A DNA stretch of 63,135 bases, counting the filler, from Choristocarpus tenellus KU-1152 (lineage: Eukaryota > Protista > Phaeophyceae), in the NCBI GenBank assembly GCA_964200185.2. It is 11 parts of 11 records of this genome, joined end to end, with 100 filler letters (N's around TTAATTAATTAA, not from the genome) between each part and the next. Parts side by side here need not be neighbours in the genome. Positions count along the whole stretch, not along the records: positions 54,682 to 60,493 come from CAXNAD020009692.1; 10 more parts are not named here. One strand, 5' to 3'. Both the position numbers and the translations under genes were made by a program. The notes under the pieces are model-generated. The model did no database searches. It was not told the DNA's origin and saw only the letters and a list, made by a program, of their open reading frames with translations. Below, in pieces: positions 3,077 to 61,259 of the stretch. How positions within the stretch are numbered: position 1 is the first letter of the stretch; each line of letters starts with the position of its first letter.

Positions 3077-5648
3077 TGTTTACATGATTCTTGGTTTTAT
3101 TGTTCTTGGTCTGTCATTCATCACTCCTCTGTTCCGCATCAAGGGTTACGCCTCTATCTTTGGGGATGCTAAGGGCGAGCCGGACTCTGTTGCAGAGATC
3201 TGAGTTGTTGTGTAGTGCTTCTGCTAACTTGTTTTTCGGTATTGCTTAGGTAAATGTTTTTTGTACTGTGCAGTTAAGTTAGCAGAATAATTCTCATGTA
3301 GTGGCTTAAGGAGGATTTATACCGTTGCCATGATAAAGGCAAATTTATGGAGCACTAGGCTGTCCATCTTTCTGATAAGACTCGCAATTGTTTTTCTGCC
3401 AGAGGCATTGAGCGTTTCATGTATGGGGTTGTTTTCGTTGGTAATGATGAGTTGACATGTTTTGTACCATTATTTAATATATGTGTGTCAAGTCATATCC
3501 TCATCTATGTTTATTGTTCCTTGGAGGTTTTCGAGGTCAGGTATTTAGAGTATTTTTGAAGTGTTCGATATCTCAGTGTTGTGAGCAGTCAATATATTTG
3601 TTCGCTTTGTCCTAGTCTAAATTGAAAATCTCTACGTCGTCCTGTTATTTTATTTTAGTTTTGTGTAAGATATGGTGAAGTATTTTTGCAGGTCAAGCAA
3701 TGTGAGAAATCTTTTACAATCAAGAGCTTAAGTGAGACCTCAGCAAGTTCTGCACACCAAATGTGCACTGACTGCTGTATTTATCTTTTGCCATGATAAG
3801 CCATTTTGAAATGTACTTAATGGAATGTGTTCTGATGGATGTGTGATACGACCTTCAGGAGTGCTTTTGAGACACGAAGAAAATTTGCTACGCTTGAGAA
3901 GGAAATGTGATTGGGAGAAATATAGCAGTCATATTCGAAGTAGAAAAATCTCTTCAACAATAGAAGCAGCTGCCATAGTATCTAGCTAAAGCTGAGGTGT
4001 AGCACATGCCTTTATCCATACAGTGCCATATTGTGGCGATGGCAGTTGCACCACATATACCCAATTTCAATGCAGTGCACAAGTCTTGGGTGTTTGAACC
4101 CACTTGCCTTAAACACGGTACACAACATACTCTGACCCTTCTACTTCATACCGCCATATACAATCATCTTATCAACCTATCATTAAAGAATAGATGCAGG
4201 TGATCAGAAACAGGTAGACACCCTCTTTGTGCACACCTTGCCTCAACAAAACCCACAGTCCACATCCTATGCATTTTTTCCTTTTCTTTACAAGTCATCG
4301 TCAACCACGGTCCTTACATTACATACATTGAGTTCATATTAGTGGCCACTTCCATTGTATTTCACTTCATATCTCGTCCTCCATCCCCTACTGCAGTCCT
4401 CACATCACATCTTGAAGTTCCACCTATTGATCATCTCAACCGTGTAAAACTTCAATATTCCTCCCACATTCAAAACATGTCCACTATGCCATGGTCTTTC
4501 ACCTCCATTGGACTTCGTTGAAGGAATCAACACTATCTATTCCAGTCGCTTGTGCATTTCTAGCAACCCCCACTGAAGTCCCCACCACATAAGGCATTGA
4601 ATACAATAAACTTTCACACGTTCACCATTTTTGCATCAACATACGTACGTGTGCCCTCTGTACAATCTTCTTTTCCTCCATACAGCAATGTACCGAGTAA
4701 TACTCATCCCATTCCTTCTCTATCCCCACTTTAGGTGAAATCCACTGTAACTACTACCTCTTTTCTACACCTAGGCAAATAGACTACCACTTTTCACGTG
4801 AATAATCTGACCTCTTCTGTACAGCAATAGACTGAGAACGACTACATAATTTATGGTCTAATTTCTTTTGTACGGCTATAAGCATCAAGTACCAGTCAAT
4901 TCACACCACGACCTCGTTCCTACACCTGTACAGGTCTAATCCTACCCCTAATGCAATGCATATTTTTGCCGTGGGTGCGCACCAGTGCAAATCAACTGGC
5001 AATCACCTCATTCATACCTTTACTTATTTTCTAAACCTATTTGCATTATGTACAACTCAGCCCGTCCATCCCTTGACCTCTTCCCTACTCGTTTATATAT
5101 TTTATTACTGTTTATCTCATGTAAAACTTGCCTCTTCCATACAGCAATACACATTACTGGGTAACACTAATCTAATTAATGGGCTCACTTTTTGCGACAG
5201 CTACAAATTAGTACCAATCAGTCAACTCCACCATTTGTTCTTCTACTCCATATTTGCCAATACTGGATCGAGCATCACTCATATAGTAACATAGTGTAGG
5301 TATTGATACATAGTATAAGGGTTACGATTGACTCTCACGCCTATGAAACTCCTATTATTTGTACGTTCACCCCTCTGGTACCATTTAGTATTCTATTGAG
5401 CATTTCTCATACAGCAATACAAAGCAAGTACTCCCTCTGTTTGGGATGATTAAACACCTATGAGCTTGGAAGAGTGGTATACGACACCCTAGAATAATGA
5501 AGGCCTGCGAAGATAGAATATGTTTGTATACACTGTCATTAAGCTCTGTTTTAAATTTAGTGGGAAACGAATCCGTACATCCCAAGCTCTATGGTCTTCC
5601 TCTCAGCCTCCCGGAAAGCCATTTCCTTTGGCCACCAAAGACGCATCT

Positions 5649-5810
5649 GAGTGAAAGTATCTTAGAGGTACGAGATTTGCCCTGTTTGTCCATTTGGGAC
5701 TTGGCTTCCCACAGGTGTTTTATGACATTTTCCTACTCTGATATGTTTCAGAGTAGGTAAAATTTATATGTTATGAAAAGGTGTGTCCGGAGCAAGGATG
5801 TTAAGCTGTC
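5649..5810. mobile_element. Truncated MITE, family A
   Basis: Starts GAGTGAAAGTATCTTAGAGGTACGAGATTTGCCCTGTTTGTCCATTTGGGACTTGGCTTCCC, matching one end of the complete copies at 58260 and 58816. The other TIR is missing. Confidence 0.8.
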
Positions 5811-6495
5811 CTTGGCGATCTGTTGTCCCACACAACTAGTTATATTATTGTTTATTAACTTGTACCTCAGTTAAGAAGAGAGTGAGATACCTTCACTAGG
5901 TGGGGCTCACCAGTCCTTACACTTAATGACTCAGAATACCAAATGACTCAACGTATCTCTAGTACACGTCAGAAACACTCCNNNNNNNNNNNNNNNNNNN
6001 NNNNNNNNNNNNNNNNNNNNNNNNNTTAATTAATTAANNNNNNNNNNNNNNNNNNNNNNNNNNNNNNNNNNNNNNNNNNNNTTCCCTGTTTTGAGACAAA
6101 AGGGAACCCTGGGGTAAACCCCCCCCCCCCCCCAAGATACTTTGGGTCAGTAAAGAGAGCAAACAGTACAGACACACCGAAACTACGATAATGATGGTGC
6201 CACATATAATATATACTCTTGAGTACATAGTAGCAGTGTCCTCATCTTCGCACTACCCTTGACCAGTTCACCTGAATGTGTGCACATATGGCCGTTCGTC
6301 ATACCGCCCATAGTGTGCCTGGGCAGACCTTCCCCAAATGTTCTCCTGTGGAAGAACGATTGAGGTGTGGTGTGAAAGTATGTGTCAGGGTCTGAGCTAC
6401 GATGAAGGGTAAGTGTGACAGGACAGACTCTCAGTTATGGATTCTTGGTCCAGGGGCAAGTCCTCCGAGCTTGTACTCTAAATAAAGTTGGCACG

Positions 6496-6772
6496 GAGTC
6501 GAAGCATTTAAGAGGGTAGGAGTTTTGCCCTGTTTGTCCGTTCAGTAGTTGGCTTCCCACCTTTTTTTTTATGCCCTTTTTCGGGGGTTTTTCGGTTTTC
6601 TGTGCGAACACAAAACGTGTAGGACTAACCCTATAGGAGGTGCGCCTGGAGCAAGGATATTGACACTTGCTAACAAGCACGATAGCCAAAATTAATCAAA
6701 ATCGCAACATTGGATTTATGACCCCGAACGGACACGGTCCTACCCCCCTACCCTCTTAAATGGTTTGGACTC
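6496..6772. mobile_element. MITE, family A variant with both TIRs
   Basis: GAGTCGAAGCATTTAAGAGGGTAGG ... CCTACCCTCTTAAATGGTTTGGACTC. Internal TTTTGCCCTGTTTGTCC and ATCAAAATCGCAAC are shared with other copies. No clean TSD. Confidence 0.75.
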
Positions 6773-7865
6773 AAGGTTGATCACAATCATTGACACATGT
6801 GTACCTGCATATCTTCATCATAGAGGCTTACTTTCACAGGATTCAACGAACAGAATAGGAACTGGACTTGAACACCTTCTGTAACACCATTCTGAACAAA
6901 GGCACGGGTTGAATCCCCCGCACTCTATCCTAACCCTAACCCTAACCTAACCCTAACCCAATAGGAAAGGAGCACCGTTAGTTTCCACCTACTCCATGCC
7001 TACATAGGCTTCCCCATCCACCATGTTGCAGCCCAATGGCCCATAAGAAACTTAAACATGAAATCGTTTTTTCCAGGAGGGGTACATAGGGTGTGCCCTC
7101 CACGTGACAGCTCCAAGAGGACTATAAAACCCATATAGAATTACATGCTTCTGATACTCTTAGTAAAAATTAAATAATGATGGGGTTGAGTTTAGAATTT
7201 TTATATTGATAGAGACAAGAAGGTGCAAATGGTCCACAGCTTTGAATTAAATCGTTAAAAGGGTGTTTAGGAAGTGCACGGACGAGATTGTCCCACATAA
7301 ACACCCCCTTGAACCAATAAACTCTACTTGGAAGCAGTTATATCATTTCATGCTGTCAATTTCAACCGTGGAGGGAGGTTGACCTGGCGGATTCTCTCCT
7401 CTTCTGTGGCGGCCCTTAGTCAACCCTATGTTAAGAGTGCAGACCCACATTCGCCTCAATTTAGTGCCTTTTAGTCTCTTTTCAAACTCAGATGATATTA
7501 TAGGCATTGGTCCAGCCTATTCCTACCTTGATCTCCATCGCATAGCTCGCGCTGTTCTAATGACATGCTTTTTTCTATTCTGTAGATCTGTTGTTAGGTA
7601 CTGCTTTGTCACGGTCTAGTGGATAATGTCCTAACCCAGAAGTTAAGAGGGTGGTACTTGAAGCACTACAGGAGCACTGAGTGATTACTTGGAGTACAAC
7701 TACAAAAGTCCATTCCAAGCACTCATACATAAAGCAGTTTAGTGAAAACAGGAAAAATATTAAGCGCAGCGAAGCAATTTTTCAATCTGATGGGAATGCC
7801 CACCGCTGCTACTTGCCTGTCTCCAAGATGTTTGGTATCTTCTGTCAGGCAAAACCTATACACAC

Positions 7866-10800
7866 CTGGTCTGCCGCCACTGCCAACCTCTCCTCCTGTA
7901 TTGTGCGTGTCTTTGGAAAGCGACTGAATGCCCTATCCCCTTCTCCACCCCTCTCTTTGCAGTGGGTGAGTTCTTGTCTGGACTTCCCTCGAACAGCCAA
8001 GCTTGCCCCACCACCTCGTGGTTGTAGCCTGAATGAGGAATTGGGGGCAACAAGTGGCTGGCCATACCCCCGAAGGTCAAGTTCAAGGGTATCACGAACC
8101 TGCAAGGAAAAGTGGGATGAGAGAGTATAGCAAAGTCAAGAAAGGAAATGTACGGGCAGAGGTCAATGAAGGACCTGGGTGGGACTGTTAGTCTTGGGGT
8201 GCCAATTCGTTTTTACTGGTGGGTACTCTTCAGAAGAAGGTGATACTAAGCAGCACAATACTAATCACTGTGTTTTGTGGGATGTTGGCAGGCGTGTTTG
8301 GGATGTAAAGAATTGCAATGTTTCGATGAGTACAAGGATGTGACAGTCCAAAAATGATGCTAGTAGTCCCTAGTCTTTCTTGTGTAGGTCCATTGAGTAC
8401 AGAGTGCTGACAATTACATGTCATGTACCCTCTGCATCACTTCTGTCAGTAAGTGTTAGGGTTCAGGTTTTGTACTCTACATTCGAAGGGCTAGACTTGA
8501 GGGCTTGAGACAAGCTTGGAACTCGGTTTTTCTAATGGTAGAAGAACACAGCAGGTGAATTGCTGCCGAAATACACTCAGCCACTGGAACTGGTAGATGA
8601 CCATGGGTAGAGGAGAGTAAAATTCCACAGTTTCAAGGATTTTTTGAAGGGGTCTTCTTCCTCAAATCAAAAGTGCAAGAGAATGCTCATACATATGAGG
8701 TGCAGCGCTGCAAGAAGAGGTGTACCTTCTAGCAGGGAAAAACAAATTTACTACCAGGTACTTTCGCTGTGAGGATTGGTGCCAAGGAGAACCGGAGGGG
8801 TTAGGGCCAGGGTAAGGGTTAAATTGGTCACCAGGGTGCTACTATTTGTCTCTATTTGTTTGTTCATTTACACCGGCATACTGTACCATAGACCCACGAC
8901 TTTCCAAAGACCAGAATCATTTTTTCTTTAAATAATATTTTTATTGTATAAGGAAAAAAAGATGAGATGTCAGTGTCAAAAGAAACCATCTGGGGTATGT
9001 ACTGGTGAAGTATTAGTATTCTTCAATTTTCCAGGTTAATCTCTTATGGCACATTCTTCCGTGCAAATGGGAATAATATAATATAATGGGTATAATATAA
9101 TATATTGGATATAATATAATATAATGAGTATAATATAATATATTGGATATAATATAATATTTTGGATATATAGTATATTGGATATAATATAATATATTGG
9201 ATATAATTTAATATAATGGGCATAATATAAAATATTGGATAAAATTGTGGTCAGATTTGAGGGAATGCGTTCCATATGTACATTTTTCAATAGAAATTCC
9301 ATATCAAGATTTCCCTACCACAATAATAATAAAAAAAATAAAAAATGAAAGAACAATTTAACAAAAAGAATGCATCATCATGCCCCCCCCCATATGTTGA
9401 CTCACTAATCACATGTGCTCTGTTGTTTGTCCAAGAGTCCTGTACATGGCATTCGTCAATACATAATACCTACACCCTAACCCTAACCCTAACAATTTTT
9501 TGTTACTTCAATTAAAATAAAAAATGATACACTGTAACAGCATCTTTTCTATCTTCAATAAATGGGTGGGTTTATTTTTGAATATTTTTTGTTATTTTTT
9601 TAAAAAACTGGAAGAAGAAAAAACAAGTTAAGGAGATACGATCTTGCTTGAGGTACTGAGATATTTACTAACTGTAGCATTTTCCAACAATTGTCCCCCA
9701 GCCTTCTTGCTTGCTACCTTGGAATGCAGGCTAGCATCCCTCTCCTGGCCTAGTATCCGTTTCCCAATGAGGTGCCTGAAAGTGACGGCACTTTGTGCCC
9801 TGACCATCTTGCTCTTGGCCACTCCCCCCCCCTCCTCTACCTCCGCCAAAGCTGCTGTCTCCAGGTCACTGAAGTGATGCCTAATTAGGTTACATATGGG
9901 GTCATGCCCAGGTTAAAATAGTGATGACAATACTGAAATAATAACAAGAATACACCGGGGAGGTTGAGGAGTACAAGGCACAGCACGAAGAGCAACAGTT
10001 AAGCCAATGAAATAGTCAGCAAAGAAAAAACTGAGCCAGTAGGATGTACTCGCCAGGAACGTCTCCTGCATGGTCGATCTACCAGAACCGCTCATGAAAT
10101 GAAATATATATATATATACATACATATCGTTTTTTCCTTGAAATTACTTACATTGAAATTACTTACAGACTGAAAGTATGTTAGGGTTAGGGTACGAGTT
10201 TTGCCCTGTTTGTCCGTTTGGGGCTTGACTACCCACAGCTTTTTTTAATGATATTTTCCTACTCCAAAGTGTTTCGGAGTACGTAAAATGTATCAAACTA
10301 TGAAAAGGTGTTTCCGGAACAAGGATATTGACGCTTCCTAGCAAACACGATAGCCAAAATTACATCAAAATCGCAACGTTGGATTTTGGACCCCAAACGG
10401 ACGCGACTCTACCCTAACCCTAAGATAGTTTGAATCTTTATACTCCACTAACAGAAACCACTTGTTCATTCAAGCGTATGGATTGTTGTTTTTATGGCCA
10501 TGTAGGAAAGAGCATACAAACACCCTCTGAAGTTTTTGTAAACGTAACGTCTTCCAGAGTTAACACCACCCGTGACAGCATCATTGACAGGGGATAATCG
10601 CGATCTCATGGAACACTTATATATTTCCCTATTAGTATATCAACCCAAACTGTACAGCATATATATGCAGAATTCTCCCCCAAGTGCAAAAAAATTATGT
10701 ATACATTCACCAACATCGTCTCAGAGGAAGAAAAAAAAAAAGCTAGTTGTTCAAAGAAAGTAAAGTTCCATCCCTCATGAAAAGCACCATCGATACAGTG

Positions 10801-53030: not shown

Positions 53031-56000
53031 ACTTGACGACTTGTGCATCAGGAGTCCTATACGTACATCAGTATCATCTACAGACCCGTAGATTGGAGCT
53101 ATACATCCTGTGGAGGTAAGCTTTCTTTTCTGGGGCGACTGTAACATAATATGCTCTAACTTTATATTGCACTAGTACTCGTGTAGTGATCTAGTTCTGA
53201 CAGATACATCAGTATTTTAGATGGACAATAGGGTTCAGGTTTCTCCAAGACAAATACCCTCCTTGATTTAGTAATACCCCAAGACACCATCACTTTACAA
53301 GATATATCCGATTAGCGCACATGGAGAGAAGATTGTATCCTCTAGGCTAGACTCCAACAATGTAATCTATCAATCAGCTCCTCCGAACATCTGTATGCAG
53401 CTACATGGATTGTGTTGTATTGGAAATTCATGGAGGTAGAGTCAAGCACTTCCCCTCCTGCAATTGAGTCAAAGCTACTAAAAGATAGGCAGGGTTGTAT
53501 TGTAAGATCCCGAGAAACAGTAAAATTATGCATTTTGTACGATTGCAGAAAGAGCCCTTGCTCAACTATGGTGTCATACTGTGTTTGGAAAGGGGTAATA
53601 TATATTTTGCGTATACTAGCATGAACATGAAGCAGTGGAATATGGTTTATTGCGCAGGATGAGAAAGATTACTTAGAATGTAAAAAGATCCAAAACCTGC
53701 CTGCCTCTCAATTGGTTTGGCTCATTAATTATTGCTAGAGAACCCTCAGGGGGAAGAGCAGCACAAGGCCTTCGACCTATCCCTAGTCACACACTGCTTT
53801 GCCTTAACTTGATTTTGTGGAGCTGCAACCCTACCTCCGAAAGTTCACTGATAGAGCATTCAAATTATATATTTAGAATAATACACAACAGTAATAATAT
53901 GCAGTAGTGTTTTTTTTTCTGTGAACGAATCCTTTGCCCAGATTAAGATCTGCTTTGTACCCTCTCGACAGGTAGTCCCTCTAGAAAAAGTACAACAATA
54001 TCGGAGAAAAGGTAGCAGTTTCAACGAAAGAAGGAGCAGGCTTATTAGAACAACACCCAAGGTAAACAGATAGTGGAATATTGCACCCCAAGAGGATTTT
54101 ACGACAAGGGGATAGTATTTACAAGACATTTCCTTAGGATTGTGAATTATATGATCCCAAAAAGAAGTAGAGGATTCTTGTGGCATCGGTTAAGAACTGG
54201 GTTTGTCCTCTCTAGTGCATTAGGAGGTTTTCCCGCAAAGCCTTTGTGTCCCCACATAGACATAAATGATACATTTTGATTTTTTCTTTATACTTCTTTA
54301 CATATATTTATCAATTTCATTTTTTTTGGTTGGTCTCAACCACCTATTAAGATGTTTGAAGGCATTGTGCATGCTTGATGCTGGGGGGCATGGAATCGGG
54401 AATTGTTTTGCATTGATTAATCATTGAATGGTGCAGAAGTCTTGTGATTATTCATTGGCAAATTACACAAAGTTGACTCCGAATTGAACTTTGAGCCAAA
54501 GTATCTGTGGGGGGGGAGGGGTCTACACCAGGGTATCCATTTGGGACAAAATGAGGAAAAGTGCATTTACATTATCCATCCNNNNNNNNNNNNNNNNNNN
54601 NNNNNNNNNNNNNNNNNNNNNNNNNTTAATTAATTAANNNNNNNNNNNNNNNNNNNNNNNNNNNNNNNNNNNNNNNNNNNNGTCTTCGTTATCATCATGA
54701 GTGACAGAGTTGCCTTCCCTACAACAAACGATGCTGTTTTGTCATATCTCGGCTTTCATTGCTAATAGCGGGAATAGCCAAATTTCAACTCTGGGCAAGA
54801 TCTTGGTCACTCTGCACCTCGTTTCCACCTCCAACACGTGGCACTGTCGTAACCTACAGACTGGCTGGCGTCCTCGACATTGACTTCTTTCAAACTATTT
54901 CGCCATGCAAGCCGCCTCCATTAGACGTGTTCACCACGTTAACCGTATCGTTTGTTCTGTTTGATTGACAAGCTATCGTTCTTCCATTACACTCTCCCAT
55001 TTTTTACGTCACCGTCGTCCCCTCCTCTCCTCAACAACGTTCTCCGCCGTGTCCACCATCAGATTCTCGACTCTACGCGCTTACCTCACCACCTGGGATG
55101 GGAAATACCAGGATGTCCTCAGCCAAGTCAACCTCCATAAGGTTCACAGTGGGCGGGGCGGTGATGGCGGTGGCGCAGACGTCGAGAGCACCAATGGATC
55201 GGCATCAGATGGCGGTGAGAAATAAGACGAGGGAGGGTGCGAACACAAAGGACGGGACGAAGATGGGGGAGGGGACAGACTGCCAGGCAGGGAGGATATG
55301 GGTGAGGGGGGTTCTGTCGACAGCGTTCCTGGTGCGGAAGAAGAACAAAACGGCCATGGAGGGTGGAATGCGGGCGTTTGCTGTACTGAATGCAATCCTC
55401 CATCTACGTCTCGGTGAGTAATGTAGTTGTAATGGTGCACATGCGGATGGCGGGTAATTAATGGCGTAAGATTGGTTTTCATCCAATCCCCCGAATGGCT
55501 AACTAGGTTGTCTTGCTTCAGCAGTGCATGCCACCACACCGGTGGATCTTGCGGGATCCCTCTGTGTGTGGTGCTGCGGTCGCTACCCCCAGGTCTCTTT
55601 GTTTGCCACAACCCGAGTGTGTTAGTGCATATCGCAACCGACTGTTGTATCTCACCTGTACTTCGTATTGTTTTGTGCCACCAATTTCGTGGTCCTTCGT
55701 AGCCGTGGATCCCTGCGTTGCGTTGTTGCACCCAATTAATGATTTGGAAAAATGCTGCTCTGTCTATTTGACACTCTCGTTCGATGCCACGCGCGACAGG
55801 TATTCCTGCCCAAAGTGCTCCATCACGTACATGGGCAAATGTGCCAACGTGGAGATTGTGGGTGACGAGAGGCACAAGGATGGATTGTGTATCAATTGCC
55901 CTGTGGCACAGGAGGGCAGTGAAGGGACTGGACCGATGGGGAACGAAGTGGCGGGTTGGGGCAGGGGCAAGGGTAAGAGTAAAAATAACGCAAGGAGCGC

Positions 56001-58259
56001 GGGCGGGTCACCCACCAGGCAAAGCCTTTTACGTCCCCCCTCACGCAGTGAAACGGCGGACATGGAGAAGTGCATGTGGATCTCGGCGTGGTTGCACATT
56101 ATACGGACATACAAGTCATCTCTGCGTGTTCAGTTTCGCGTTGATTTGCACGTGGGTCTTGGTTGGTTGTACATCATGTGGATTGCTCGTCCTTTGTGTG
56201 TTCGGTATGACGTTTTTTTGGAGGTTTCCATGGGCCATGGAACTTACCTGTTTGACGTCTCCCTTCCTTCCACGAGATGTATCTGATGGGTCTGACGTTG
56301 TGGAGGGTACGGCTTAACATTTTGGGGATTCCGGGGAAATATTGTCAGGACCTCACTTAATGATACGATTGCCTGCACCGTTGTTTACGATGCTGTCCTT
56401 CTTGTTGTGCTGTCTGTGTACTGTGTCATGTGTCATGATGTCCAACCAGGGCTGAGAACACTGCACTACACGACCTTCGCCCTCTCGACCCGACGCTACC
56501 CTAAGGCGGCATGAAAGAGTTCGCCTTCCACAACACACCAAAGCTCGCCATAGTTGTCCATCACCGCCGAGCCAAGACTCAACGACGAAGAGGCGATCAA
56601 CACCCACTTGCGCCAGGTGATGAAGTGCTTGCAAGTGAAGATACATCCTCAGGGCACCATCGCGCTATGTGTGCCCCACCCGTGGGACATGCAATCACAC
56701 CGCCTACACGGTGAGTTGCAGAGTTCGCCAGCGCTAAAATACGGGGTGTATTGCGGGAGACTATTGCAATCCGCCATGGCCGTTATCAGTCCGACCGTGT
56801 GTCCATCGGAAATGGTGGCGGCCGTTCAGGAGATGCGGATTCTGTCGTATTTCCTTTTGGTGTCTTTTGCTCTTTCCCCCTGGGTCGCTAGTAGTTCTTT
56901 GTTTGATTGTCCGCGAATCGCATGCTGGTGTTACTTGTCTTCACTACATTATTTTTGCCGCCTTTCCTTCTATTACCGAATTTCCTATTGTTTGCATTTT
57001 CGCATTTGTTATTTGGCTTGCGTTCCACACTCATTGTACTATTATCATGTTAGTGGTATGCAATTTCATGAAGTGCAACGATACCGTACTTGTGTGCTGT
57101 CACTGTCAAGTTTGACGCATGCCAGACCCACGCGCTCGCTCCCGCCTTCTCTTCATTCAGGGGCGCTTATGTCGTCGAAGGTGGGCTTGGTTGTGGAAGA
57201 TCATCCCCTGCTTACAATGTACAAGATGAGGGAGGGGGGGCGCCCTCTCGCAGGCACTGATAACTATCTCAGATACCACCAGGACATGATTCTTCTCGCG
57301 CACAACGATGGGACAGAGTTCACATGCAATTAGTGAGTCACCGTCGACGACATTTTGGCCATGGGAGTGATCCATCTCCTCCGGTGCTCCAAACCATGTG
57401 TGACGTCAAGTACCAAGGTGCTGCGACGGACATCCCTATGAGGGCCCTCCACTTCCTCGTTAACAGGTTTGTTAATTACGTTACACACGCCCTTCTTCAT
57501 GGGAGCAACGACTTTTTTTGTATAGGTGTAGATCATCGTTAAACAGTAACGCAACAAGCTGGGTGACGGTTCAGGGGCGTCCGTACCATGAGTGTGTTTC
57601 CCTGAATCAGTATGTTAAGTGTCCAACCGCACCAAGAGTGTGTTGCCCTGTATCAGTATGTTACTCGTACATTGCCATATGATGAATCTGTGCGCAATGC
57701 AATATACTCCTCGAGATAATTTACGACCTGCCCTCCTATGATAGGTACACGAATCCTGGGGACACCGTCATCTCCTTCAGCGCAGAGAGGCACAACGTGA
57801 TGGAGGCGGCCCTTGAACGGAGCAGGAGGGTGGAGGTGTTCGTGTCCAACGTGGTGTCAAAGGACGACGCGAAAGAGAAGATGGAGACCTCCTTCGGACG
57901 AGCCTACAAGGGTGGCAAGTGGAAGGTAACAAGGGTGTGCTGGCTTTTTTCCATTTCTTTCCAGCTTGTTGTCTGTCTTGGTTCGCTATGGATAGGTGTC
58001 GGGCGTGGGGTTGTGGTAGTGATGTTTCCTTGTCCATGTTTACACGTTGCTAACACGGTGCACGTGGTGACCCACGCCACAAACGGAAATCGCGAGACCC
58101 CAAGACTTTGTGTGTGAGTGTTGGTACGTTGTAGTGTCCTCCTTCCCCACACGAAAAAACAAACGTACTGCGGTACACCCCAAGATCTTGAACCAACGCC
58201 GGAATAACCCCTCGTACGTGACATAACCTTATCGCATGGCAAACACTTCAATGCCACAT

Positions 58260-58518
58260 GAGTCAAAGTATCTTAGAGGGTAGAGCCGCGTCCATTTGGG
58301 GGCCAAAATCCAGTGTTGCGATTTTGATGAAAATTTGGCTATTGTGTTTGTTTGGAACTATCAATATATCCTTGTTCCGAACACACCTTTTCATAACATA
58401 CACATTTTCCTACTCCGAAACATTTTGGAGTAGGAAAATGTCATAAGCATTCCGTGGGAAGCCAAGCCCCACATGGACAAACAGGGCAAAATTCGTACCC
58501 TCTAAGATACTTTCACTC
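58260..58518. mobile_element. Complete 259-bp MITE, family A, with 4-bp TSD ACAT, intronic
   Basis: ACAT|GAGTCAAAGTATCTTAGAGGGTA ... TACCCTCTAAGATACTTTCACTC|ACAT. The 23-bp TIRs have one mismatch. Confidence 0.92.
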
Positions 58519-58815
58519 ACATGGTTGGGCTGTCACATGTACGCACATGGTTGGGCTGTCACATGTACGCACATGATGTTGCAGGTATCCACGTCTCTCG
58601 TTCAAGAACGTGTGATAGGCCCTTCCTGCCTGCCGGAAGCCTTGGGGCAGACCCTCGTCCCAATTGAGATGCAGCGGCCGTTAATCCTCAGGGAAAGGCA
58701 ATGGGACGCGATGAAGCCACCGTTTTCGTTGCGACAACGGTGGCGTCGGACTTCGGCTACCAGATCGAGGTGAATCTGGCATAGAATGCACTTCGTAACA
58801 TATTTGTCAAGAACG

Positions 58816-59072
58816 GAGTGAAAGTATCTTAGAGGGTATGAGTTTTGCCCTCTTTGCCCATTTGGAGGTTGGCTTCCCATGAGTTTTTTAATGACATTTT
58901 CTTACTCCAAAATGTTTAGAAGTAGGTAAAATGTGCATGTTATGAAAATGTGTGTCCGAAACATAGATATTGACACTTCCTAATATACGCAATAGCCAAA
59001 ATTACATCAAAATCGCAACNNNNNNNNNNCCGCCAAATGGACGCTGCTCTACCCTCTAAGATACTTTGGCTC
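58816..59072. mobile_element. MITE, family A, opposite orientation, intronic
   Basis: GAGTGAAAGTATCTTAGAGGGTA ... TACCCTCTAAGATACTTTGGCTC, the reverse complement of the 58260 copy. It has a small N gap and an unclear TSD. Confidence 0.88.
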
Positions 59073-60109
59073 ACGAACGGCAGAGTCACGCTCTTGACAC
59101 GCAGTAGACACGTATTTTTTTCTTCCCGAGTCCGAACCTATCTAATGCGGCACCCAAATATGTCGCGTAGAAGACTATTGGCCTTGCGGATAAGTATTGG
59201 ATCCGTCGTGTGTTCAACATTTGCCACGATAAGGTTGCCGTTTTTGCACCACCTTCGGTCGTGCACCTCCAAATTACGCCCATTAATGAATAACCGAACT
59301 CTGGCCCCCCCCCCAACACCCCTCCACCCCCCCCAACCCCACCGACGTCTTTGTCTTCCGCAATGCTCAACCGCATGCAAGCTCGTCCGCGAATCCCGCC
59401 GAAATGGCCTTATTCCGGCTTGACGGGAAAGACTACAAAGTCGGCGGAAATGACCTCCCTGCGTGGGGTGATCTCCAAGTGTGCAACTCTCGATCAGAGG
59501 CCTTCCGTTCGATCTCTCTTGACGACCAAGAAGAACAGTGCATTCGGCTGCTTCATGTGGCCAACAACCAGCTCAAGCGCATGCTTTCGCCTGGAACGGA
59601 GGTGTGTGGGCCGTGTGCAGAGCTCTACTTGCGCGTGGCAGCCACTTGCCCTCTCTACTACATGTGTTGGACTGAGAAGGCAGACGACGCCAATATGGAA
59701 TTCACGTCAAAAGTTCAGCAGAGCGGAAGCCGTGATGAGGTCCTCCTCCCCTTCTCCCAAGTTGGCCCCGGGCAGATGTTTGTCTCGCCCGTAGTCGGGA
59801 GGGTGTGCAAATCCCGGGCAAAGAATGACATGAGATCACCGTTCAACATGCTCCCGGGTCTTACGGTAGTGCGTTCTCATGGGTTTGAAGTGCGGGATTC
59901 AGACTCAGACTTGACGCCAATCACCACTAGAAAACACAAACGTCCCTCTTCCCGCACGGGTGGAAAGGGGAAAGGTAGCAAGGTGCGGAGGGGCGCTGGC
60001 GATTCTGCGCCGGAAGACAAGCCGGAGTATGTCAGTGACGTGGAGGAGGATGAGGAAGAAGAAGAGGAGGAAGAAGAGGAGGATGAATGGGATGACGAAG
60101 AGGAGTGTT

Positions 60110-60429
60110 TGTCCTTGAACGGCAAGCGCAGTGTCGGCGGTGAGCTGGTTCCCGTTGCCTAGGGAGTCTCGTTGAATGACGATGGACAGAGCAAACTGCT
60201 CAAGCCAGCCTTTTTCACGGATAGACTTGCTGACGCGTGCAAGGCCACGCTCGCTCAGGGGTCGCACCATCTCCGTGCCCGTGATGTTGCCGAGTTTCAT
60301 CTTGTACATGCCGAGGTAGTGCTGTTCGAAGAGCATGGACATGCCCTTGGCATTGCTGTCCAGTGCTCTCGATCCATGGGCAGTGCCATTGGTGCGCAGG
60401 GGGGTCGTTGTTGAGTGAATGTTGGACAT
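60110..60429 (-). pseudogene. N-terminal fragment of a ParB/Srx-like domain protein
   Basis: GCC-ATG at 60429 follows a pyrimidine-rich leader. EMVRPLSERGLARVSKSIREKGWLEQFALSIVI resembles ParB-N (R..s...l..L..SI...G.l.pi.V). The frame runs into the antisense of the acidic tail before any DGxHR motif. Confidence 0.5.
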
Positions 60430-61259
60430 GGCGAAGATTGGGAAGGTGTGACGGGGATAGATAAGAAAGAGCTGCTGGTGGTATGTGCGGAAGNNNNNNN
60501 NNNNNNNNNNNNNNNNNNNNNNNNNNNNNNNNNNNNNTTAATTAATTAANNNNNNNNNNNNNNNNNNNNNNNNNNNNNNNNNNNNNNNNNNNNCGGCACC
60601 CCCCCCCCAGATACTTTGACCCAAAACGCTAAAGAATCCAACACAACTAACCAGGTCTTCATTGGAGGCCTCATCGAGACGTTATGACAGATTAACCATA
60701 ATTTCCAGTATTTTTTTCCGGTTTTGTTGTTTTTACTAAATCTGCCATTTCCAACAAAAAACGTTTGTGTTCAGAGGGTGGTGTCTCAACCACATCGAAA
60801 TGAAAAAATATTTTGAAGATATCTATGCGAAGCCAATGTTGTTGGGTGTCGAATAATATTATTTGTAGTTTCTGAATCTCACATTAAAAAACGTTTTAAA
60901 AATAAACTTAATGATTCAGACTTATAGGACTGAGGGAGTATATGTTTAAGGAAAATCTGGGATTTTCGACCTTGAGAAAACCTAACCACGAGGGGAACAA
61001 TAGGTTGGGGCAAAGCAATTGAGAGGTAGTAAGTTTGGAACCTTTTGCATCCTAAACCTAAATCACCTCTCTTACTCTGTGCAATACACTCCATTTCATT
61101 GCTTTATGTGCAAAATGATGCTCGCAAAATGATACCCCCCTTTCATAGACAAAGTGACACACAATAGACAGAGGTTCTCTCTTCTATTTGATCACGACAC
61201 ACAAAATTCTGACAAGATTCCTAAAATTTCTCGTCCTTCCTATTTTTCCACTCCTTCTC

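Follow-up and report, generated by a model that had tools for sequence, protein, structure and literature searches.

Has a DNA methyltransferase of bacterial or phage type acquired introns in a brown alga, and is what is left of it dead or repurposed? The question was raised by three putative exons of Choristocarpus tenellus, lying in the window (the whole stretch of DNA that was analyzed, 63,135 nucleotides) and, more precisely, in its piece 54682-60493, which is eukaryotic DNA with spliceosomal introns. The original prediction combined these exons into a beta-class N6/N4 DNA methyltransferase domain with both signature motifs degenerate. We found seven exons of the corresponding gene in this piece, two of them upstream and two downstream of the three that encode the fold:

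55063-55413, + strand: upstream exon of the same gene, found by tblastn to L010, L002 and L007
55800-56075, + strand: exon with CxxC pairs and a basic linker; frame open, junction to the following exon as in P0031
56450-56710, + strand: methylase-fold exon 1, with the motif IV strand and HPQG, the equivalent of the LKPGG segment
56711-57160, + strand: intron between fold exons 1 and 2; GT..AG, 450 nt, phase 1
57161-57466, + strand: methylase-fold exon 2, with two core strands, the variable target-recognition region and the helix before motif I
57467-57744, + strand: intron between fold exons 2 and 3; GT..AG, 278 nt, phase 2, junction matching P0001, P0021, P0029 and P0031
57745-57925, + strand: methylase-fold exon 3, with open frame; SAM-binding half of the domain
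58585-58769, + strand: exon 4, helical linker domain, from paralog comparison
59371-60162, + strand: last exon, with a conserved domain without known fold, a basic cluster and an acidic tail

The three fold exons are real at the positions first proposed. They are separated by GT/AG introns, and their junctions recur in the genomic paralogs L009 and L002 and in the NCBI spliced models P0001, P0029 and P0031, a support made of gene predictions and genomic comparisons rather than of transcript reads. Intron positions are kept even in loci that are just 30-40% identical at the protein level. As an extent, 56450-57925 describes the fold well and the gene poorly, since two exons on either side also belong to it. 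The first of these (55063-55413) encodes a short helical segment, an acidic/Gly linker and the first half of a Cys cluster, and the CxxC pairs of the second may form a putative Zn-binding region. Three further upstream exons are common to Scytosiphon and to the genome of L002/L003, and are open in both. An intact gene has at least 10 exons and, as estimated from exon lengths, encodes about 1,000 amino acids, with the fold domain in its middle.

Outside the fold domain, no exon of the gene matched a known family. The C-terminal domain is well conserved (window 59452-59900; P0031 420-570), with 40% identity to the most distant locus; its structural model is of low confidence and returned no family or fold match, and the SET and 2OG-oxygenase assignments that we considered were guesses without support. 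Similarity to the paralogs in the last exon stops at about 60087-60106. One conserved upstream exon (L010 7837-7995, L003 244-402) resembles by eye a SAM (sterile alpha motif) domain, and gave no match in Pfam. A 259-aa ORF at 56554-57333 is an artefact of intron read-through: the intron 56711-57160 happens to be open in one frame, and the ORF has no homolog.

Relatives and fold of the split domain

We searched the window exons singly, while the whole domain was represented by the database proteins P0029 and P0031 as deposited; single exons of other loci entered the alignments as separate rows, and L002-L005, L011 and L012 are loci from ENA and Logan samples. In a search of 1.84 billion representative proteins, exon 3 had 25 matches at E<1e-3. 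The named ones are NCBI models of two brown algae, Choristocarpus tenellus and Ectocarpus sp. 12, in agreement with the brown-algal origin guessed from the sequence; Scytosiphon promiscuus contributed a 590-aa model in a later search. With introns counted in, the DNA of four Choristocarpus contigs matches the window at 82-88% identity.

Family profiles were of no help in recognizing the domain. Pfam, PHROGs and NCBIfam returned no significant family for the window exons, the database paralogs or the upstream exons. The check originally suggested, a match to PF01555, gave nothing at E<=10 for the window exons, the spliced paralogs P0029 and P0031 or the 18 exon-3 rows. Sequence and profile searches of the PDB were likewise without significant results (best 3iv6, E 0.05, over the motif I strand), and tblastn against phage genomes returned noise only. 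These blank results, even for spliced proteins, are explained by the low identity to known beta-class methylases, which is 8-17%.

Structure and profile-profile comparison gave a different picture. The AlphaFold2 model of the Scytosiphon domain (P0031:75-330; pLDDT 75, pTM 0.78) had 44 Foldseek matches in the PDB at E<=1e-3, with top E 5e-8 and TM about 0.5. Ranks 1 to 41 are taken by bacterial-type amino-methyltransferases and by the bdelloid N4CMT: TTHA0409 (E 5e-8), CcrM (1.6e-7), M1.HpyAVI (2e-7) and N4CMT (5e-7) are among them, and PvuII, BceJIV, MboIIA and RsrI are further leading matches. The MT-A70 proteins MTA1 and METTL3 trail at rank 42 and lower, with E about 1e-3 against 5e-8 for the bacterial enzymes; in the modeled structure the domain is thus not closer to MT-A70 (METTL3/METTL14/MTA1) than to restriction-modification methylases. 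Compared by hhalign with six methylases of phages and E. coli, the domain reached a probability of 92 and E 5e-7, with motif IV, the target region and motif I aligned collinearly across 152-220 columns. The whole-domain score was 51, compared with a maximum of 17 in 60 shuffles, and the exon-3 profile scored 34.5 against known methylases, compared with at most 17.5 over 60 column shuffles. Taken by themselves, exons 1 and 2 did not convincingly beat the shuffles (2/60 and 29/60), so that the signal resides in exon 3 and in the whole domain. Given the 25 relatives of exon 3 and its profile score above shuffles, the three-exon observation is not due to chance. The modeled domain is confirmed to have the permuted class-I SAM-dependent fold of beta-class N6/N4 DNA methyltransferases, with motif IV before motif I, as had been proposed.

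Among viral proteins, N4/N6 methylases of Pandoravirus and of phages, one of them fused to ParB, were the top structure matches (E 1.7e-8 onward). As the Pandoravirus enzymes are the best of these (E 1.7e-8), we considered that the gene could be a relic of an endogenous giant virus (Nucleocytoviricota) that gained its introns later. The Pandoravirus matches are, however, 13-17% identical, no better than phage or bacterial ones, and no viral genes flank any locus. Pattern scans of viral (including IMG/VR), metagenome and prokaryotic genome collections found no relative, a result that excludes no more than close relatives, since the scans relied on exact short words. The dense and conserved spliceosomal introns also argue against a viral relic, which we regard as highly improbable.

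Loss of the catalytic motifs and decay of the window copy

The two signature motifs lie in the first and third fold exons:

56557-56568, + strand: motif IV site (D/S/N-P-P-Y), in the register of the global hhalign alignment; strand end in the model
57773-57793, + strand: motif I site (DPFxGSG), reading SFSAERH by hhalign

Both are degenerate, as predicted. The reading of motif I was also right, whereas that of motif IV as AEP was off by three residues: the profile alignment gives S-I-T-A, with no prolines and no aromatic residue. The same site reads SITA, SIAA, SIGA, AIDA or SLSQ in seven rows and varies freely between relatives. In motif I, the first Gly is replaced by Glu in 18 of 18 relatives, and the position of the second is occupied by H, N, D, A or T, and never by Gly, across the 18 rows. 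The acid of motif II is replaced by a hydrophobic residue (V, L, A or M). No relative that we examined, down to about 30% identity, keeps PP(Y/F/W) or FxGxG. By established methyltransferase chemistry, the loss of motif IV removes the activation of the target amine, and the changes in motifs I and II remove SAM binding.

We asked whether the intact relatives might still be active enzymes with unusual motifs, with Ser first in motif IV as in N4-cytosine methylases and a remodeled cofactor pocket. Ser does occupy the catalytic position in five of the seven exon-1 rows, and the invariant Glu of motif I indicates that the pocket is constrained. Nevertheless, the prolines and the aromatic residue of motif IV, the glycines of motif I and the acid of motif II are all gone, and motif IV is free to vary, which makes residual activity very unlikely. 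That the Glu fills or reshapes the cofactor pocket is a guess of ours. Even the most distant relatives share the motif losses, so that the family had probably given up catalysis before it spread.

In rough Nei-Gojobori estimates over the three fold exons, dN/dS is 0.35-0.44 between species and 0.63-0.73 among the Choristocarpus-type copies. Judged from these sequences, the reading frame is under moderate purifying selection. Because all the relatives examined have lost motifs IV and I and the acid of motif II while keeping the frame, the family reads as a pseudo-enzyme derivative and not merely as one mutated copy. On the same sequence grounds it is not to be filed as a PF01555 enzyme, because the fold is present and the catalytic and cofactor motifs are not.

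The window copy itself has gone further. Compared with intact paralogs, it bears four in-frame stops (55223-55225, 56502-56504 and two at 57331-57336) and four frameshifts (an 11-nt deletion near 55066, +1 at about 56554, -1 at about 57354 and a 13-nt deletion near 58670). The acceptor of its last exon has changed from AG to AA (59369-59370), and two MITEs have inserted in its introns 3 and 4. The two frameshifts at about 56554 and 57354 had been marked correctly from the sequence alone, and the stops at 56502-56504 and 57331-57336 had been missed. This copy is a pseudogene and does nothing itself. The description 'catalytically dead or repurposed' was therefore right about the loss of motifs, which turns out to be family-wide, and 'repurposed' can apply to the intact relatives only, which have lost motifs IV and I as well.

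The two insertions are copies of the same element:

58260-58519, strand not assigned: MITE copy 1, in intron 3; GAG..CTC ends and ACAT target duplication, absent from the paralog L006
58816-59072, strand not assigned: MITE copy 2, which lies in intron 4 in the opposite orientation to copy 1 and is missing from L006

The element is short (about 260 bp) and non-coding, with inverted ends GAG..CTC of 23-29 nt and a target duplication of 4 nt at copy 1 and in L007, and of 3 nt at copy 2. By its terminal motifs it may be Sola-like. Two of the four Choristocarpus contigs that are 82-88% identical to the window carry the same MITE family, and further copies lie in L007 (212-472) and L009 (2974-3244 and 7647-7927). 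Four of the five copies seen sit in introns or upstream sequence of the methylase-fold gene family. What looks like an 815-bp long inverted repeat element at 58259-59073 is really two separate inverted MITEs around exon 4. Minor features of the region are an assembly gap of 10 N inside copy 2 (59020-59029), a 26-nt tandem duplication at the right edge of copy 1 (58518-58575) and a 37-nt direct repeat in intron 2 (57581-57663).

Spread of the family and competing explanations

At least eight separate Choristocarpus contigs carry copies of the gene, 82-93% identical in pairwise comparisons. A second genome hosts an apparently intact copy, present as two near-identical loci (probably allelic), together with one decayed copy and exon-3 fragments, seven in number and near-identical. 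An isolated exon-3 fragment lies at L011 10008-10443. As its protein cluster comprises seven near-identical members, four of which are on one 1.04-Mb contig, the fragment was seemingly multiplied as part of another repeat. Copia-type LTR retrotransposons lie near two family copies (L012 13601-19346, with 486-bp LTRs, and L011 16317-20228) and are apparently independent insertions.

The downstream flanks of the copies are unrelated, and L009, L010 and L002 have no common neighbours. Since copies that are numerous, dispersed, often decayed and surrounded by unrelated flanks are the pattern of a mobile-element gene, we consider, with a little more confidence than doubt, that this brown-algal pseudo-methylase family, of which the window hosts a dead copy, is cargo of giant DNA transposons and provides a non-catalytic binding module. 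The central domain descends from a beta-class N6-adenine/N4-cytosine DNA methyltransferase of prokaryotic or viral type, and the gene would travel as an accessory gene of the transposons, in the manner of the ParB-methylase gene of Ectocarpus Sola1-1 and of red-algal PAG2. The intact members, presumably unable to transfer methyl groups, would keep the domain for nucleic-acid binding or scaffolding without catalysis; together with the Cys clusters, the basic cluster and the acidic tail, it may bind the element's own DNA or chromatin. Copies without an active element would decay, as the window copy did.

Domestication is a serious rival, because transposase and element ends were not found and the Scytosiphon copy sits among host genes. 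No DNA (DDE) transposase occurs among the called genes of the fetched loci within 10 kb, where spliced genes are poorly called. The other loci break off within the gene or are too short for terminal inverted repeats to be seen, and the Scytosiphon copy, which is flanked by a prolyl-hydroxylase-like gene and by further host genes, has none around it. We considered the 2OG-oxygenase gene beside it as a PAG3, and it looks like an ordinary membrane-anchored prolyl hydroxylase. The copy itself (L010 13653-13900) ends directly after the basic cluster, with remnants of the acidic tail interrupted by stops downstream, and may be truncated or starting to decay. In L009, a neighbour gene with a Helicase_C_2 domain (6240-8302) is not common to the other loci. 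The family could thus go back to a single acquisition, from a prokaryote, a virus or a transposon, that became fixed in the role of a chromatin protein, its methylase domain dead, and then duplicated without mobility of its own, the extra copies being ordinary pseudogenes. Introns kept down to about 30% protein identity and a dN/dS of about 0.4 fit such a history. The same dN/dS is nonetheless high for a conserved host gene, and domestication accounts poorly for two genomes with many scattered and decaying copies, for their unrelated flanks and for the lack of shared neighbours among L009, L010 and L002. We regard it as possible, with odds clearly against it.

A binding function could also be exerted in a heterodimer, if the domain were the inactive partner of an active methylase from the same element or genome and supplied DNA binding, as METTL14 does for METTL3. 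Beta-class enzymes commonly work as dimers, the inactive METTL14 offers a precedent, and the fold and surface Arg/Glu positions are conserved. A methylase-bearing transposon gene has been reported in Ectocarpus (PMC12477816). Against this, none of the fetched loci contains an active methylase gene, and brown algae are reported to be without DNA methyltransferases, with DNA methylation low or absent, so that an inactive-partner role appears unlikely.

The end of the piece contains part of another gene:

60106-60330, - strand: truncated exon belonging to a second gene, tail-to-tail with the first; a homologous exon occurs in L011

The alignment of this exon with L011:4548-4823 scores 76, compared with a shuffle maximum of 43. 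The L011 exon has a DGNHR motif of ParB/Srx-like kind, and within 400 bp after it comes a diverged version of the last exon of the methylase-fold gene (5211-5720), an arrangement that suggests a second, related gene without the methylase part. Neither exon scored against phage ParB, Pfam, NCBIfam or PDB, and we treat the ParB identity of the DGNHR exon as a lead. No ParB domain was found fused to the methylase-fold gene.

More speculatively, and as something that we would rather doubt than expect, the brown algae, which are reported to lack DNA methyltransferases, may harbor an old and hidden family of dead prokaryote-type methylase proteins with an invariant Glu in the cofactor site. Its intact members would be non-enzymatic readers of DNA or of 4mC/6mA, or partners of a transposon-encoded active methylase, and would form a chromatin-control module for transposons or host that profile libraries do not see.

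Comparison with known systems

Bacterial-type methylase domains with introns in eukaryotes and methylase-type accessory genes in algal transposons are already known. With the PF01555 enzymes (M.RsrI, M.MboIIA, M.PvuII, CcrM, TTHA0409 and M1.HpyAVI) the brown-algal domain shares the fold and the motif order over its whole length. Unlike them, it has no Pfam score at 8-17% identity, has lost motifs IV, I and II, and is split by introns and embedded in a long eukaryotic protein. The bdelloid N4CMT (PMC8885841) and the Marchantia DN4MT1 (bioRxiv 10.1101/2021.02.12.428880) are also bacterial-type beta-class domains in eukaryotes, and N4CMT, with a structural match of E 5e-7, contains introns as well. 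In contrast to the brown-algal family, both are active, low-copy host genes, and the Marchantia enzymes keep TSPPY. In the DIRS1 retrotransposon (PMC4738411), a likewise transposon-borne amino-methylase domain has been judged inactive in all copies. That domain belongs to the unpermuted PCIF1-like group and lies inside a retroelement polyprotein, whereas no reverse transcriptase or tyrosine recombinase is linked to the brown-algal gene.

Closer parallels come from algal transposons. Red-algal Plavaka elements carry the accessory genes PAG2 (PF01555 and SET) and PAG3 (ParB and 2OG oxygenase) (bioRxiv 10.1101/2025.02.11.637652). As in that system, a methylase domain is present in many, mostly decayed copies of an algal genome; unlike PAG2, the brown-algal family has neither PF01555 detection nor a SET domain. 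In Ectocarpus, giant DNA transposons carry spliced accessory genes, and several of their families are without transposase (PMC12477816). One such gene, of Sola1-1_Ec32, encodes 1104 aa with a ParB-like and an N4/N6 methylase domain and is a predicted producer of 4mC or 6mA (PMC12477816). The gene in the window resembles it, in a comparison by description only, in the brown-algal host, the prokaryotic-type methylase domain, the similar estimated size of a long protein and, in the piece, a putatively ParB-like exon lying tail-to-tail. It differs in that its motifs are dead and that no fused ParB, transposase or 282-bp inverted repeats were found.

In the literature, we found no description of a brown-algal family with a methylase domain dead throughout, although the Sola1-1 gene may belong to the same family. 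The published surveys looked for brown-algal DNA methyltransferases by BLAST- and orthology-based screening, which would probably overlook the family, because Pfam, NCBIfam, PHROGs and PDB sequence searches give it no score, even as a spliced and intact protein. The family would extend the methylase-type accessory genes of algal giant transposons to a case in which catalysis was lost long ago while fold and frame were kept, and it enables a concrete test of whether such accessory proteins exert their effect through binding instead of writing a mark.
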